From NCBI GenBank assembly GCA_965113315.1, contig OZ220363.1: a stretch of 64,000 nucleotides of DNA; one strand, written 5' to 3'. This stretch comes from Podarcis vaucheri (taxonomy: Eukaryota). Under the pieces are notes generated by a model. The model searched no databases, was not told the origin of the DNA, and worked only from the letters and a program-made list of their open reading frames with translations. Made by a program: the position numbers and the translations under genes. The stretch's first letter is position 1. The number at the start of each line of letters is the position of its first letter. This document shows positions 47,501 through 56,500 of the stretch, in pieces.

Positions 47501-50500
47501 CAGATACATGCATAATTTTATTTGTATGCCAACTTTCCACAGTTCAAACCATGCTCAAGGTGGCTTACAGCATGAAAAAATACATAACTACAACACAACA
47601 AAAGCAGTCATGAGCAATAAATAAAACAATAAAAAATACACAACCAAATATAAACCACAACAATTCTACACATCTGAATTAAGATACAAAAAACAGCAAC
47701 AGTCCCCAACCCAAACACACCAGCCCAAGAATCAGTTCAGCAGCCTCAGCTTTTTGTAGCTGGAGTCAGTTAGGGCCCTACCCTTCTAGGTCAGGTGAAA
47801 AAAGGCCTGCAAGGCAAGGGGTAAGTCTTCCAGGTCTCACAGCCAAGATGGTCAGATAGGATGCAGGAGACACTATTTCCTGACACTACTTTTGTATTAG
47901 AAGATTCAGCATTAATCAAGAGGTAGCAGTAAACACAAGGCCAAAACTTACTGTTGTGGATTCTTTGGAAAGCATAATTAGTTGGGTTGAGTGACCATTC
48001 CCCAAAGTATTCCACTGCCTGTGTCTTCGACAATTTATCTGCAAAAGGTGTCTGTTTTGGTCTTGAGGCTAAGAACGAATTGGCCTGAAATGCAACCACA
48101 GGCCGGGGGAAGAGGCGAAGTGTGCGGGTATGCATCTGGAATCCTTGTAAAACATTTGGTGAATTGAAGAATCTCACCATGGCAACCCTAAAAAAATCCA
48201 AAAGGTTGGTAATATATTCATATATTCATATATATATTCATTCATATATTCATGACAAGTCTGAAGGACACAGTACATTCACATATCATGAAAATTCTAC
48301 ATTTGCCTCTAGTAAGGGAAGGACAGCGGAATAAGTTCACCCATTCATAGCTAATATCAACTGCGGCCTCAAGACAAAATATGCCCTATGGAAATAAAAG
48401 AAACACCAGTGCCCCTATTGCGCTGTGACCAAAGAAAAATATATTTGGCTTCTATTCTCACTTTCTTTCCAGCAAGCCTAGGATACAAAGATGATATTGA
48501 GTTCCATTATCAACTCTGAAGGCAAATAATCTCTTTTACAGTAGTTGGGCCAAACAGCCTAAGCCAATAGAAGGCACTCCACACCACCGAAGTCTCAAGT
48601 GGCAGAAGTAATGGAACCAGGAGAAGTCCCAAACTATGATCCCACTCTTTCAGAGGTAGTGCGACCCCTTCTAGAGAAGGCTGGACATTGAAGCTGGATA
48701 GAAGAACCATCCACTAACCGTATCTCAGTCTTGTTGGATTATGTTTCAACTTCACACAGTTGAAATCTGGCTGGTTGAAATCCCGCAAATTGATTGCTCA
48801 CAAGGCAGAGAGCTTCGAAGTTCCTTTTGCTTTGGGTTTTCCCAACATGAAAAGAACTTTTAAGCTCTCAGACCTGCTAACTGTGCTCTGGAACACTCTT
48901 GAGAGATCTTGTGGAAACTTGGATAGTCCCGCAATATGTCACGGGAGCATCCCAGAGCCCAGTAAGCAAGTCTGAGAGCTTAAAAGCTCTCTGCCTTCCT
49001 TGAAAAGAAAGACAACCACACAGGTGTGATTCCAAGGGTATATGCATTTTTCCATGTACATGTCATTTCTGGAACGTAACCCCCCACAAAAGATTCAATC
49101 ATACAATACTACAATCTAACAGTGACTCGGTACATTCACTGTCTTGCCTGCAGAAGAAGAAAAGGAGAAATGAAGCTGCTTGTCATCAGCATAAAGAGGA
49201 CAATGAGCTATAAAACTCTGTATGAACCTACTCAATGGTTACCTCTACATTTTTTTTTCTATTTTAAATTTTTAATTAGAAAACATAGTCAGATTTAACA
49301 GAATATATATCTCAAAACAAAAGACTAGGAATGGCCAACAGGATGCTCTCCAAATGGCGTAAACCACAACTTTCATAATCCATGACCCACTGATCGTGCT
49401 GGGCTTGGGCCAATGTTAGTCGTTGTCCAAAATATATCTGGAGGGCATCACACTGGCTGACCGCTGTAATGGACTGTGTGGAATCCGTATATACACAAGA
49501 GAATCTCATCCTCTAGTCTTATGCAGCCTAAGCAGTAGAAAATATTGTTAAAAACTGATGGTAGCTCACATAGAGTGTGTTCTAGTTTATAACAATAAAT
49601 GTTCATGAAAAAGTCAATGAAAAAGCATTTGCTTTTTTACTGGAAAGCCACAGCATTTCAGCTAACATTTTCTGCAGGACAGAGCAGAGACCTTCCACTG
49701 TATTTGGAAATTTAACAAAAATACATTGCTCAGACTCACCGAGTGGCCACATCCACAGAGTCTACATCATTGCCATAGATCAGGGGGTTGAACTCTGTAG
49801 AAGGTGTGGACTGCATGTCATTCTGAGATTTCCCCGTAAGCAGTGGGATCTCCTGGCTTTCATGAAACTTCTCTAGGTTAAGAATAGGCTGGGTATTCAA
49901 GCTCATGCTAGCCAAAGCCTGAAGGGCAATAGGTCACAAGGGTAATAAATAAGAACGGCATTGTCAAAACTGCTTAAACTCATGGACAAACACAACCCAA
50001 GTGCAATGTTCTAGTTCCCCAGAATCAAAATACACCTCTTTCAGCAGATCAGTAAACTTTTAAGCACTCTTTGACTAACCTTTGGCTGCTCCAAGCAGAG
50101 AAAAAGAGAGGACATTACAACCATTTTACATAACAAATTTAGAATGCTGAATGGTAAATCTAATGACTTATTGGTTGACTAATTTAGTCACTTTATCTTG
50201 CCCAAAGCAACCCAAAGCAACTTAAAATCCCCCAGGCTAACTAGTATTAGGAGGAGGGCAGGTGAGTAAAACAAGATTTATAAATATATCCCCCCCCCAA
50301 ATATACTGGAAACTAACACGAGGAAGGTGAAATCCACCCTTTCAGTAGCTCAACTGTATAAAACCAGAGGATGGGTGTGTTAAAAATTAATAAACTGAGG
50401 CACTCCACAGAGTACCCCAAACACCAGAGATAAGGCAGATAGTGGCACAAAAAAAGGACTTTTTCCACCTGTAGTATTCCAGTTGTAAAACACCTTTCCT

Positions 50501-53500
50501 GAAAGAAGGCACCTGGAGTTCACTTTGTTATCCTGTAGGCACAGGGTTATGCCCCAAGGTATATTTCACATTTGTTAAGTACTGGTTGTTTTACAAATAT
50601 CCACTGCTGTTTTTTAATGATTAATGCCTTCGTGCATATTTTATTCCTTTTTTTATTTTTAATTGCATTGTAAACCACCCTGTGATAATTTTATTTATTT
50701 AAGATATTTGTATGCCACCCTTCATAACAATCCACTCAGTATTATTCTCTGCACTGAGATCCCAACTCCATCAATTTAAAAACTATCTTTTCAATCCAAA
50801 TAAAGGTGTAGGGTCACTGTCCCCTTTCTCATAACTGCTAGTCAGGGAAGCTCAGATTTCTAGGACAGCGCACTGTTTTAAACCCTACAGTCTTCTGCAG
50901 CTCACATGGCAAAGCTAGTATTTTCACAGAACTAACATCTCATGGTCTGACAACATCACCCAGAACATGAAGCATATAAGAGTTAAAGTTTTCACTTCCG
51001 CACGTAGTACACAATCTCATCAATCTAATTTTGCCTCGTCCTCCACTTCTTAACAGTTGTGGCCATCCTACAAACCTTGTGCCTTTCCCCTCGGCCCGAA
51101 AAGTGAGATGAGTGCCACATCCCATAGTTGCCTTTGACTGGACTTAACTATCCAGGGGTCCTTTACCTTACCTCTTTTTTTTAACCTAATCATCCCCGTT
51201 TTTCTCAATGTCTGCCTCTCTCTCTCAACCTCCTTGTCCTTCCGTAAAGTTCATTTCCCCACCCCCCCAAAGCAAATAAATCAAAACAGGTTAAAAAATA
51301 ATCCAATGGAAACTTGAGGCAGAAAAGAGTAAAATAAAGACACCTTTTTGTCAGGCGTGAGCAGCTGTTTCTGAGTGATTGCAGTCATGCTAACCAGACA
51401 CTGGAGGCAAGATGGAAGATCACATGACAACACCAGCGGACAATCAGAGGCAAGACGAACACATGATCACAGAGAGACAGATGGAGAAAAAACTATTACT
51501 ACTAATACCACAGATGAGAAAGGAAATAAAAAGGGATCATAAACAGTCACAGTTCCTTAGCAAGGCCAGACTGCTTTCACCCCACACATCTGCTTGCATA
51601 CACTTTTTTTAAACGGACTACTAGCCAGCTGTTTTCAATATAAATATTTATAATGACACTGATCTGAAAGGGCAATAATAAGCCCGTATATATTTGTTAA
51701 GTATTTATGCATGCATAATACTGTTGCGCCAATATTTCCCACTACCATAACTATGTTTTGTCACAAGGCAGCCACCTTCACAATGTCACCCACATTTCCT
51801 TTGTTTTACCCTGTGGATAGTAAGGTTTTGTGTCTTGCATCATAGAATGAAAGGAATGGTTATTATTCTTTTGTTAATTCACTTCACACTGCTCAAATGT
51901 GTGGGAGTTTTGCTGAATAGCCCCTAAACTGTGGAGAGAGAAAAGCAAACAGATTCTGAACGAGCGGCTGGGGATTCTACTGTAAGGGTCAATGGCTGTT
52001 CACTGCAACAGGTTACACAGGAAATCACAAACGGTTAAATGTGTAGTTCTGCTCTTCTATGAGAGCCAGAAACAGCAGCTTTTGTACTGCTAGTCTTAAC
52101 ACTTTACCTTTAAATACTGCATGCAGCATGCAAGGAGGTGTGGGGGAAAGAACAGAAATAAAATCATAAAACCTATTTTGACAGACTCATTCAATCTGAC
52201 TAAAACCAATAAATAGCTTCACAGGATTAGAGAAAGAGAAGAAATATGGGCCTCATAGGCAGCAATATGAAAATGGAGAAAATGATCATTAAGGAAGGGG
52301 AAGGCAAGACAACTGAAAGCCCAGAGATTCTAAAGGGTGTATCATGCGGGAAAGCAGATTTGTTTGTAGATATTAAGTACTGGTTTAGATGACCATTTTA
52401 AATGTAATGATGAATCATTTTATGTAGTGCACAATATGCCATGAAGCTCTGATGTGTATGATTATCTTACAATACCACAGGTTTTAAATGGGGGTTGATT
52501 AAGGATGAGATAAACCACAGCCTACCACAGCTTCAAATACACGAAAATGAGTTAACAATACACAGTAATAACACCTGCTGATTTCAATGTTTCATGACCA
52601 CACCAAAATGCTCATATGAAAACACACTGGTGGTTTTTTGTCCGGGGGGGGGGTGTCTCCCAATCCCTCAGAGCCAACTGGGGGAAGCCCTGTTGTGCAA
52701 GCAGAGGTCCTTGCACAGGGCTTCTGCTGACAGAAGCGATTAGTTGACTCTCACCCAGGATCCCAAAACATAACAAAGTGACCTGGTTTGGATGTAACAC
52801 TAAATCATAGTTCGGTGTTAGACTCACATGTTCCCCCTTTTCCTTCTGTCAGGGCTTCAAGGAGTTCAGAAGCTTTCCCTTCCATGTTAGATTAACTGGG
52901 GCTTACTGTGCCATTCAAACCTGGAGAATGTGTGGCTCATGTTAACTATGATCAGCTGAAACAAGCCAAATTCATACCGGTTTAGGAAGCTGGCTTGTTT
53001 CAATTAATTGTAGTTACAATGAACCATAGTTTAGGGATTGGACAACCCACTCAACTCTGGTGGATCTACAACAGAAGCAGAACCTTCAGTTTTCCGCCTA
53101 AAAGTCACACCAGAGGAGAGGCCACAAGCCTGAGGCTTGCTTTCATAATTCTAAACTACATACTTGCCTAGGAGTAAATCCTACTATTAAATATAGCAGG
53201 ACTTACTTCTGCATAAACATGTGTAGCATAGGATTGTAAAGAATCTGAACAGGTAGAAAGGCAAATCTAACAGAATTTTGGAACAAATTCAAAAATGTTA
53301 CTAGATCAGAACTTTTTTTTTTTTTAACAAGCTTGACTGTTCACAGTGTGGCACAACGGCATCCTGAAAGATGGGACTCAACAGTATTTCAGCTTAATAT
53401 ACAGTTGTTCCTTGTGCCAAGTGTTAAGGCCAGTGCTTTTTTCAGGGGGTATGCAGGGGTACGGATACCCCTAAACATTTTGTGAATCTAAGTTTGGCCT

Positions 53501-56500
53501 CATTGAGGGGCAGAATTTCAATATAAGTAGGAAAATGAGAGCACCCCTAAACATTTTTTTAGAAAAAAGCACTGGTTAAGGCTTTTAGCTATTTACAAAT
53601 CTGATCCAAAGCCTTTCTTACTTTTTTATCTCTAGAGGCTCCTAGGCATTTTTATGTGAGCTTCTCTAAAGTAGAAACAGAAACAGAGGACAGAAAAGTA
53701 AGAAAGGCTTTGGATCAAATTGTAAATAGCATGCCACGAGAAGATTATTGTTCAAGGAAAACAGCTGAAAAATGTAAATGGAAGGTCCTGCAGTTTCACA
53801 AGCCATGTCAAATTAAAAAATAAGTGAATCTTAAATTAATATAGAAAGGCAATTTTTTGTTATTAGGGGAAATTTACAATGTGCTTTGAAAACAAGACTA
53901 CAACTTCTACTTTGTGCCACTTAAAAGAGAATGAACTGGGGGGGGGATCAAAGTGTCTCCTCAAGGGAAAGGATACTTATTGGACCTTTGTTCAATAGTA
54001 TAATTGGACAGAATCTGCATCTAAACACACACCGGCTTTCCCTAGTCATCCTCTAACCAAGACTGAATGTGTTCCAAAGGAGCCATTGCAAAGATATTTT
54101 TTTATTCATGGCACAGAGCTACAGAAGTCCCATTGGACAGCAGAATTTCCTGCATTGAATGAAGTATCACTAATGTACCCACTATCAGCTACCTGATATA
54201 ACTCTCTTTAACCACATTTCTCATAATTTAGAAATGTTTCTTCATAGAAGTTGAAATAGTCATATTTATATTAGAGAGTCCACTTTGAGTCTGAACTTTA
54301 GTAATAAGTTGCCCCATTATGATGCTGCAAACTGTGACAGCATCCTTAGTTATCTAATATACTAGTAGTGGAAATTCTCCCAGCCACATTCACTAGAATC
54401 CTTACATACCTGCTTTAAGTGCTTTTTCAATTCTAAAGATTCTGGTTCCGGCAAAACAGGTAATGACTCAGCATTTGTAGGAACAATCACCTGGAATAAA
54501 AAATTTATGGAGAAAATTGCATTTACAAAAACTCTTGGAGTGGACAATCTTTTATGACTTCTTGGAAACAAGACAGAAATAGGGGCAGGAACCTTGAAGT
54601 GGATCTAATTTTTCCTATTGCTTATGCATTATTGGCTGTGCTCTGAGATGAATTCAGAACTGTCAAGCAGATGATTTGGTTTTCTAATCTGTCAACAAAT
54701 TAAAATGTGACCTAATTATGTCACTTTGCTCCTTGGTAACAGTTGTTTTAGAAAACTTTTCTTTGCCCTTTCAATGGAATATTTTTTTAAGTGTCAAAAA
54801 CAATCACCATTTAATTATAATTTTAAATTGTTCTTTTAAATATTGTTTTAACATAAAAGCCCTATAAATATATTAAACCAATAAACATATTTCAATTTGT
54901 CTTGCACATCAAGAAACATTTAACAAAGGCTCTATGGGTGTGGCTATCCGAAATGTGTATTTGCTAAATTATAAATGTGTTTTTAAGCTGTCTTTTAGGG
55001 TCTTGCATGCCCAATGCGGCCTACATAACACAATATAAAATATATTAAAAATCAGTAATCAAACAGTTACAAAGGACAGTGACTTAAAAGCCTAACCAGA
55101 ACCATTTCAGTAGGTTATTACAAAACAACTTCAAGCAAATCTGCAATTTAAAAAACGAGCAGCTGTTAAAACCCTTTAATACATAAACAAACAAGGCAAC
55201 ATCTCTTTTGTGTTAATTAAGAGAAGGAGGTGGGATTAGGAAATAAAATCAAAACACCCACACAGTCCCCATCAAGATGAATTATATATAAATGCTGTTT
55301 TATGAATAGGAGTTACCTACCTTATTAGTATCCAGATCAACTAGCCATACATCATCTGGCATTTTAAAGTCTAGTTTGTAAAGAAAGAAGCTGGCTGGGA
55401 CTCCAATGAGATAGGGTGTTGGGGCCAGAAGCAGCTGTAGCAGGCAGAAAATATTAATAAGGAAAAAATCTGAATCCTTACAGCTTTTCTGCTAACAATC
55501 CACCCGCAATCACTAAAAGCAAACTACTGGAGAGATGACGACACTTAAAAGCATAAGCAAATGTTGCTACAAGAATTCATTAAACTTTAGGCTCAGTAAA
55601 TTACTGTGAAAACAATAGATGCTATAGCATTACTGAGGTAAAACAGGTGCACATCTGAATAGTAATCTGGATAGGAGACCACTGTGAACGTAAGAGCAAT
55701 ATATTCACATAAATAAGTATTTTTAAAAAGAATTTATCAAACACTGAGGACAGCAGAAGCTGAGAAAACATCTAAATTTGGGAAGGCCTCCTTGCACAGG
55801 TAGAAAATGAGCTTTTCATCAAAGGACCAGATTATAAATGGAAGAAAACTGGTGCTTGAAAAGGCAGCCTGTGGTAAAAATGGCAATCAAAATGATATTG
55901 TGTTTGGAACAGCACAAAAAAACTGCAGAGGAAATAAGTTTTGTGGAGACCAGCAAAAGAAAACATTTGACAAAATAGGCCTTGCTAAGAAATATGTCCT
56001 TTGCAAACATTCTACGTTCTTGTAAAAGGTAAAAGAATAAGCCTAAAGCTTTAACAGCAGCAAGTAATGTTGCTGGAAATTGTTTTCCCTGTTTTACAAT
56101 TATTGGCTCTTACAGGAACTACACTTCTAGAATCACAGGTTTCCTGCAGGAGTAACATGACCCTTCAATCTTCTAAAGTAACTGTGGACCAAATTGCCTA
56201 TATGGCATCAACAGCTTTGGAAAAAAATATACCATATAACCACAGATATAATATGGAACATCTCAAAGTAAAGTTTACTCTTTTCTACACTGTCTGCCAT
56301 TTCTATTCCTATCATTAAGCTTCACTGTAATTTGTAGGAACATCTCAGTAGTTGCCAGGCACATTAAAAAATATGCATTTTAATTTAGACAGGACAAAAC
56401 CCAGGAAGAATTCGACTATTCTCCTGATAAAAGATTTCAGCAGTGTCACAGCGGTACATCCTTCACTGAAACGATGGCATACCTGCTCTGCAGAAGCCAT

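Follow-up and report, generated by a model that had tools for sequence, protein, structure and literature searches.

The MADD gene encodes an exchange factor for Rab3 and Rab27 that is needed for regulated secretion. In the lizard Podarcis vaucheri the gene lies on the minus strand of a 64,000-nucleotide stretch of contig OZ220363.1 (assembly GCA_965113315.1), which was analysed as a whole and is termed here the window. The region of interest is the intron between the exon that ends in ...KKHLKQ and the exon that begins with ALASM..., here called exons 7 and 8. This intron is 4,491 nt in length and has GT..AG ends. An earlier reading of the sequence, termed here the original prediction, had proposed that three short alternative exons of 9, 57 and 6 nt are hidden in the intron as an array of neural cassettes, with up to eight splice combinations. 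It appears reasonably probable that the intron instead holds three units of differing status, i.e. a real cassette exon of 57 nt, a conserved 9-nt candidate and a 6-nt chance look-alike (Table 1).

Full-length MADD proteins, used as tblastn queries, locate 13 to 30 more exons in the window and confirm the exon order. Database searches were run exon by exon. Exon 8 alone, when used as a word-search query, retrieves for the most part gene calls of a single exon from genomic contigs, and these carry little information on splicing; no chain in the PDB was found to match exon 8. In a mole-rat MADD isoform, residue 402 is the last of the Pfam DENN (cDENN) match, and the exon 7-8 junction is at residues 430/431, 28 residues further on. 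The junction had been predicted to lie at about the cDENN/dDENN boundary; this is roughly right, but the Pfam search of the isoform gave no dDENN match by which the exact boundary could be fixed.

Table 1. Features of the MADD gene in the window, in the order of transcription.
Feature	Position	Strand	Content	Evidence
MADD exon "7" (...LELKKHLKQ)	54490-54410	-	81 nt, 27 residues, constitutive	Splice sites read; tblastn with MADD proteins; RNA contigs end or join at 54410
Island around 9-nt unit	52278-52048	-	233 aligned columns	blastn lizard-bird, 66.5% identity, E = 5.6e-18
Acceptor region of 9-nt unit	52133-52117	-	tTGCATGcTGCATGcag	Last 16 nt contain UGC four times and (U)GCAUG twice
Candidate 9-nt microexon	52116-52108	-	TATTTAAAG (YLK)	Lizard-bird conservation
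Island around 57-nt exon	51606-51268	-	356 aligned columns	blastn lizard-bird, 77.5% identity, E = 3.8e-69
57-nt cassette exon	51400-51344	-	TGTCTG...AAAAAG, 19 residues, inserted between KKHLKQ and ALASM	RNA joints, orthologues, bird DNA
6-nt unit	50085-50080	-	CCAAAG (PK), or 9 nt CAGCCAAAG (QPK) via tandem acceptor at 50088	Pattern only
MADD exon "8" (ALASM......VDVATR)	49918-49739	-	180 nt, constitutive	Sequence, RNA contigs, tblastn
Known 9-nt MADD microexon	8468-8460	-	GAGCGGAAG (ERK)	Inside Pfam PH_MADD match near C-terminus, 250 nt upstream of LNHIKKC exon

All three AG-exon-GT units are found at the places predicted. Each has the properties ascribed to it, namely phase 0-0, no stop codon, an AAG-GT end, and a pyrimidine-rich acceptor with TGC. 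The exon 7-8 intron has 195 stop-free in-frame AG..GT units of no more than 60 nt, and in 30 of these pyrimidines make up 70% or more of the tract. When an AAG-GT end is required in addition, 14 units remain on the sense strand of the whole 64 kb, or 0.22 per kb; about one would be expected in the 4.5-kb intron, as against the three independent units seen. The sequence pattern by itself is weak evidence for the three, and each unit needs outside evidence. In a self-BLAST of the window none of the units is part of a recurring repeat, and a search of Rfam gave no match at any of them.

The 57-nt cassette exon

The RNA sample consists of 14 small runs from two related lizards, and contigs from these were aligned to positions 49700-54550. 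The splice joints of the contigs have GT..AG ends, which shows that they are RNA. Exon 7 is joined to the 57-nt unit (54410 to 51400) in runs X1, X4 and X7, and the unit is joined to exon 8 (51344 to 49918) in X1 and X7. A direct joint from 54410 to 49918, also with GT..AG ends, skips the unit in X4, X6 and X7. Since both inclusion joints and the skipping joint occur in RNA, the 57-nt unit is a real alternative cassette exon. In X1 only the inclusion form was assembled, and in X7 it has the greater depth, whereas skipping is dominant in X4 and X6; the cassette is thus clearly regulated. In X1 and X7 the two cassette joints are supported at equal contig depth (52.3 in X1, 22.6 in X7), without the 9-nt insert, and the principal form with the cassette is clearly free of both the 9-nt and the 6-nt unit in these runs. 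By the record coordinates of X4 and X6, the part from exon 8 follows that from exon 7 with nothing in between. One contig of X4, at 51120-51400, joins exon 7 to the 57-nt exon and retains the intron downstream, which suggests that the upstream intron can be removed first.

The exon has the acceptor ...atcttgcctccag and the donor gtgtcttt, and is in phase 0-0. Protein models of other vertebrates carry the same insert. In a profile-free search of representative proteins, a catshark model (Scyliorhinus torazame, GCB80473.1) displays CLVSLSVIMQQELVTAEKK before ALASM. With the catshark region as query, a 19-residue insert between KKHLKQ and ALASM is found in Meleagris gallopavo, Columba guinea, Acipenser sinensis, Etheostoma spectabile and Knipowitschia caucasica. 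Homologous cassette segments are present in S. torazame, Pristiophorus japonicus and Dissostichus mawsoni, those of the sawshark and the Antarctic toothfish being partial. The annotated inserts of other vertebrates, among them turkey (M. gallopavo, XP_010709733.1) and catshark, are orthologues of the lizard cassette and share junction and length with it, with 10 to 18 of the 19 residues identical. The pigeon (C. guinea) cassette agrees with that of the lizard at 18/19 residues, and pigeon residues 531-551 map to 51403-51341 with 90% identity (tblastn). The consensus across species is C-L-V-S/R-M/L-T/S-x-I-T/M-Q-x-Q-L...K. As the insert occurs in birds, sturgeon, teleosts and sharks, the cassette goes back to the ancestor of all jawed vertebrates or further.

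The original prediction had termed this unit, with the other two, a hidden microexon. That description does not apply: a length of 57 nt makes it a short exon, too long for a microexon, and public gene models of birds, sturgeon, teleosts and sharks already have it at this junction. A paper describing either the 57-nt cassette or the 9-nt YLK unit was not found in a limited literature search.

Two of the models differ in detail from the lizard arrangement. In the catshark model, unlike in the lizard, the cassette is joined to the exon that precedes exon 7, and exon 7 is skipped; either this isoform is real or the model is in error. The model from E. spectabile has three extra residues, VLQ, before the cassette. 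This looks like use of an acceptor 9 nt upstream, and again the choice is between a true variant and an erroneous model.

A likeness between the cassette (51344-51400) and the start of exon 8 (49862-49918) was also observed. The 19 residues are alike in register (xLxSMxxxTQxxL), with 6/19 identical in both lizard and turkey; out of 20,000 shuffles, between 69 and 811 score as high, the number varying with the species. Perhaps the cassette arose long ago by duplication of part of the beginning of exon 8, or the two may share a helix pattern.

DNA from a bird provides a further comparison. The contig Ga0065711_1036281 was obtained from metagenome contigs via a degenerate pattern for MTAITQ[KQ]QLLTPD, and it is taken to be bird host DNA because its exon peptides are identical to those of pigeon and turkey MADD. 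A blastn alignment of the lizard intron with the corresponding bird interval recovers both flanking exons and, inside the intron, two islands and no more; elsewhere the lizard intron has no significant match in this one bird contig. The larger island surrounds the 57-nt exon, in which 55/57 nt are identical, with one synonymous change and one K>N change. About 120 nt of the intron upstream of the exon are nearly invariant, and about 50 nt downstream are included in the island.

The 9-nt and 6-nt units

The second island surrounds the 9-nt unit. Within it, 20-nt windows with 18 or more matches occur only across 52134-52098, and the 35-nt core at the unit has 32/35 positions matched between lizard and bird. 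The core in both species is TGCATGCTGCATGCAG-TAT(T/C)TAAAG-GTAAAGTG, where the hyphens mark the ends of the unit. The lizard unit has the acceptor ...ttgcatgctgcatgcag and the donor gtaaagtg. The bird counterpart, TATCTAAAG, also encodes YLK; the sole difference is TTA/CTA, both of which are Leu codons, and the AG acceptor and the GTAAAGTG donor are identical. Judged from this pair of sequences, the 9-nt unit has been conserved over roughly 280 million years with a synonymous change only. A scan of prokaryotic and viral contig collections with the 9-nt core pattern gave no match, as expected.

UGC next to a 3' splice site recruits SRRM4 and SRRM3, and the eMIC domain of these proteins promotes definition of very short exons. 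GCAUG is bound by Rbfox proteins. The 9-nt unit falls within the length range of the microexon class (3-27 nt), keeps the frame and has no stop codon. The UGC triplets listed in Table 1 are close to the 3' splice site and are identical in lizard and bird, as are all 16 bases at 52132-52117; position 52133 differs. TGCATG is present at 52132 and again at 52125, and both copies are kept in the bird contig. The unit thus has conserved (U)GCAUG sequences of putative Rbfox type close by. The 9-nt unit bears all the sequence features that mark a regulated microexon, and on this evidence we lean towards its being a real microexon, one of low inclusion or restricted to certain cell types. The prediction of a neural microexon at this site stands as regards the UGC-rich acceptor, the good donor, and conservation with a synonymous change only, but the unit was found in none of the transcripts and protein models searched.

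The properties of the 6-nt unit are different. Its donor is gttagtca, and its first base (50085) is changed in the related lizards, C>T on the sense strand. The bird contig has no conserved block or counterpart for it, and the intron between the cassette and exon 8, which is shorter in the bird, holds no comparable unit. In addition, no joint at the 6-nt unit is present in the related-lizard RNA contigs. The 6-nt unit is probably a chance look-alike of splice sites, and its proposed role as a cassette is given up here. Alignment of the intron to other sauropsids had been proposed as a check on all three units; made against the one bird contig, it finds the 57-nt and 9-nt units kept, but not the 6-nt unit.

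Other parts of the intron display repeat-like properties. At 50996-51319 and 53426-53587, RNA contig depth is thousands-fold above that of the rest of the intron, and many contigs run into unrelated sequence. These two segments look like interspersed repeats that are transcribed genome-wide. Between 53588 and 53730 is a long inverted repeat with arms at 53588-53625 and 53694-53730. It has sub-threshold matches to several unrelated miRNA precursor families (29-44 bits, versus gathering thresholds of 83-211), and is probably a hairpin-forming repeat and not a known miRNA.

Interpretation of the 9-nt unit

Inclusion of the 57-nt exon adds 19 residues just past the catalytic DENN core of MADD, and the insert would probably, although with low confidence, lengthen a helix that crosses the exon junction. 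The UGC-rich, GCAUG-bearing acceptor of the 9-nt unit is of a kind that fits definition of this exon under the control of SRRM3/SRRM4 and/or Rbfox. If used, the 9-nt unit would be a minor or cell-type-restricted form. The use of the 9-nt unit, its regulators, its tissue specificity and any effect on exchange activity are inferred. In its full form, the proposal is that YLK is an unannotated microexon, conserved in sauropsids or more widely and controlled by SRRM3/4 and Rbfox in a limited set of neurons or neuroendocrine cells, which together with the cassette would yield four variants (+0, +3, +19 and +22 residues) of a helix immediately behind the DENN core of MADD. The chances of this full proposal are considered to be evenly balanced.

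Several points weigh against this reading of the intron or limit it. No joint at 52116 or 52108, the borders of the 9-nt unit, is found in four related-lizard RNA runs, the tissues of which are given as codes, and 9-nt inclusion is not the major form in X1 and X7. The contigs come from relatives, drop rare variants and have coded tissues, and a missing joint is for these reasons weak evidence. YLK is found in 0/196 MADD proteins that cover the junction, including eight turkey isoforms, one of which has the 57-nt exon; 191 of the proteins lack any insert and the other five carry the cassette, while PK and QPK are likewise absent from all 196. Intron conservation rests on one bird contig. A mammalian MADD model with the 57-nt exon was not retrieved, and all three units are absent from the mammalian isoforms that were; the full-length word search covers the best 120 of 7,633 matches, all without an insert, and cannot show that the insert is absent in mammals. 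Two AlphaFold models are poor, with pLDDT of 32 and 38. In both, the junction is spanned by a helix, which in the turkey model runs on into the cassette, a hint that inserts might lengthen the helix behind the catalytic core or shift its register.

The absence of YLK from transcript and protein models raises the question of whether the conserved 9-nt block is never part of an mRNA, and functions instead as an intronic splicing regulator of the 57-nt cassette 707 nt downstream, with the GCAUG pair and a U1-binding pseudo-donor as its factor-binding parts. The two conserved GCAUG motifs at the block agree with such a role, as does the clear regulation of the neighbouring cassette, which is mainly included in X1 and X7 and mainly skipped in X4 and X6. 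However, conservation extends unbroken beyond the GCAUG pair through the AG, the nine bases and GTAAAGTG. The frame is also kept, there is no stop codon and the single change is synonymous, none of which a regulator needs. A purely regulatory block is fairly unlikely. That the island is a chance remnant of slowly evolving, functionless intron is a reading left room by the comparison of two species only, but outside the two islands there is no significant lizard-bird match, the island has an E value of 5.6e-18, and the peak of identity coincides exactly with the 9-nt unit and its splice sites. Such a chance island is very improbable. Chance conservation of the 9-nt unit and readings that have not been thought of are together given a small probability.

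The use of all three units as a combinatorial array of neural cassettes, with up to eight isoforms, is likewise highly unlikely. Pyrimidine tracts, TGC, AAG-GT donors and frame are present in all three units, and three units are somewhat above the one or so expected in 4.5 kb. Against this, the 6-nt unit lacks a bird counterpart and differs at its first base in related lizards, PK, QPK and YLK are in none of the protein models that cover the junction, and the RNA contigs display only two splice patterns, one with all units skipped and one with the 57-nt exon alone. Of the array as originally proposed, the 57-nt cassette is real and the 9-nt unit remains as a conserved candidate, while the 6-nt unit and the eight combinations are not borne out. 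Of the three units chosen by pattern alone, one is thus a real exon, another a good candidate and the third a false positive, which is a useful calibration.

Comparison with known MADD splice events

Two reports describe biallelic MADD variants that lead to a severe neurodevelopmental and endocrine disorder (PMC11126384, PMC11141940). The cassette, and possibly the microexon, behind the DENN module would be added places where splice-site variants could matter.

The well-studied, classical isoforms of IG20/MADD differ far downstream of the DENN module, at exons 13L, 16, 21, 26 and 34, and to our knowledge none of the six involves the exon 7-8 intron. Inserts at this intron could tune the catalytic part of the protein by cell type. 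The six isoforms are IG20pa, MADD, IG20-SV2, DENN-SV, KIAA0358 and IG20-SV4, and two of these are neuron- or neuroendocrine-restricted (PMC3994957).

A 57-nt MADD exon is known in zebrafish, DreEX0044314 (human HsaEX0037217), and is neural and Srrm3/4-dependent (PMC12626424, supplementary file 1). It shares gene and length with the lizard cassette, but directly upstream of it in zebrafish is DreEX0044313, a neural alternative exon of 204 nt; the lizard cassette is preceded by the constitutive 81-nt exon 7. On account of this neighbour the two are probably not the same exon. A search for papers on HsaEX0037217 found nothing.

A 9-nt neural MADD microexon is also known in zebrafish, listed as DreEX0044304 in VastDB, and its inclusion falls on depletion of Srrm3/4 (PMC12626424, supplementary file 2). 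A 9-nt MADD microexon has in addition been described as ancestral to bilaterians (bioRxiv 10.64898/2026.09.05.749416), and this is assumed to be the ERK exon near the C-terminus. The reverse primer used in RT-PCR (reverse transcription-polymerase chain reaction) of DreEX0044304 encodes LNHIKKC, and the known microexon must therefore lie immediately before the window exon at about 8207-8139 (...ELNHIKKC...). Identity of the YLK unit with the known ERK microexon is ruled out by this primer mapping, as YLK is about 44 kb upstream in the gene. The two are alike in gene and length, and would be alike in kind of event if YLK is used, but are different exons. The ERK microexon is present in 22/71 retrieved mammalian isoforms, is identical in those, and serves as a positive control for the protein set. 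If the YLK microexon is real, the Rab3/Rab27 exchange factor would have a second, independent splicing control point behind its DENN module, besides the C-terminal ERK microexon.

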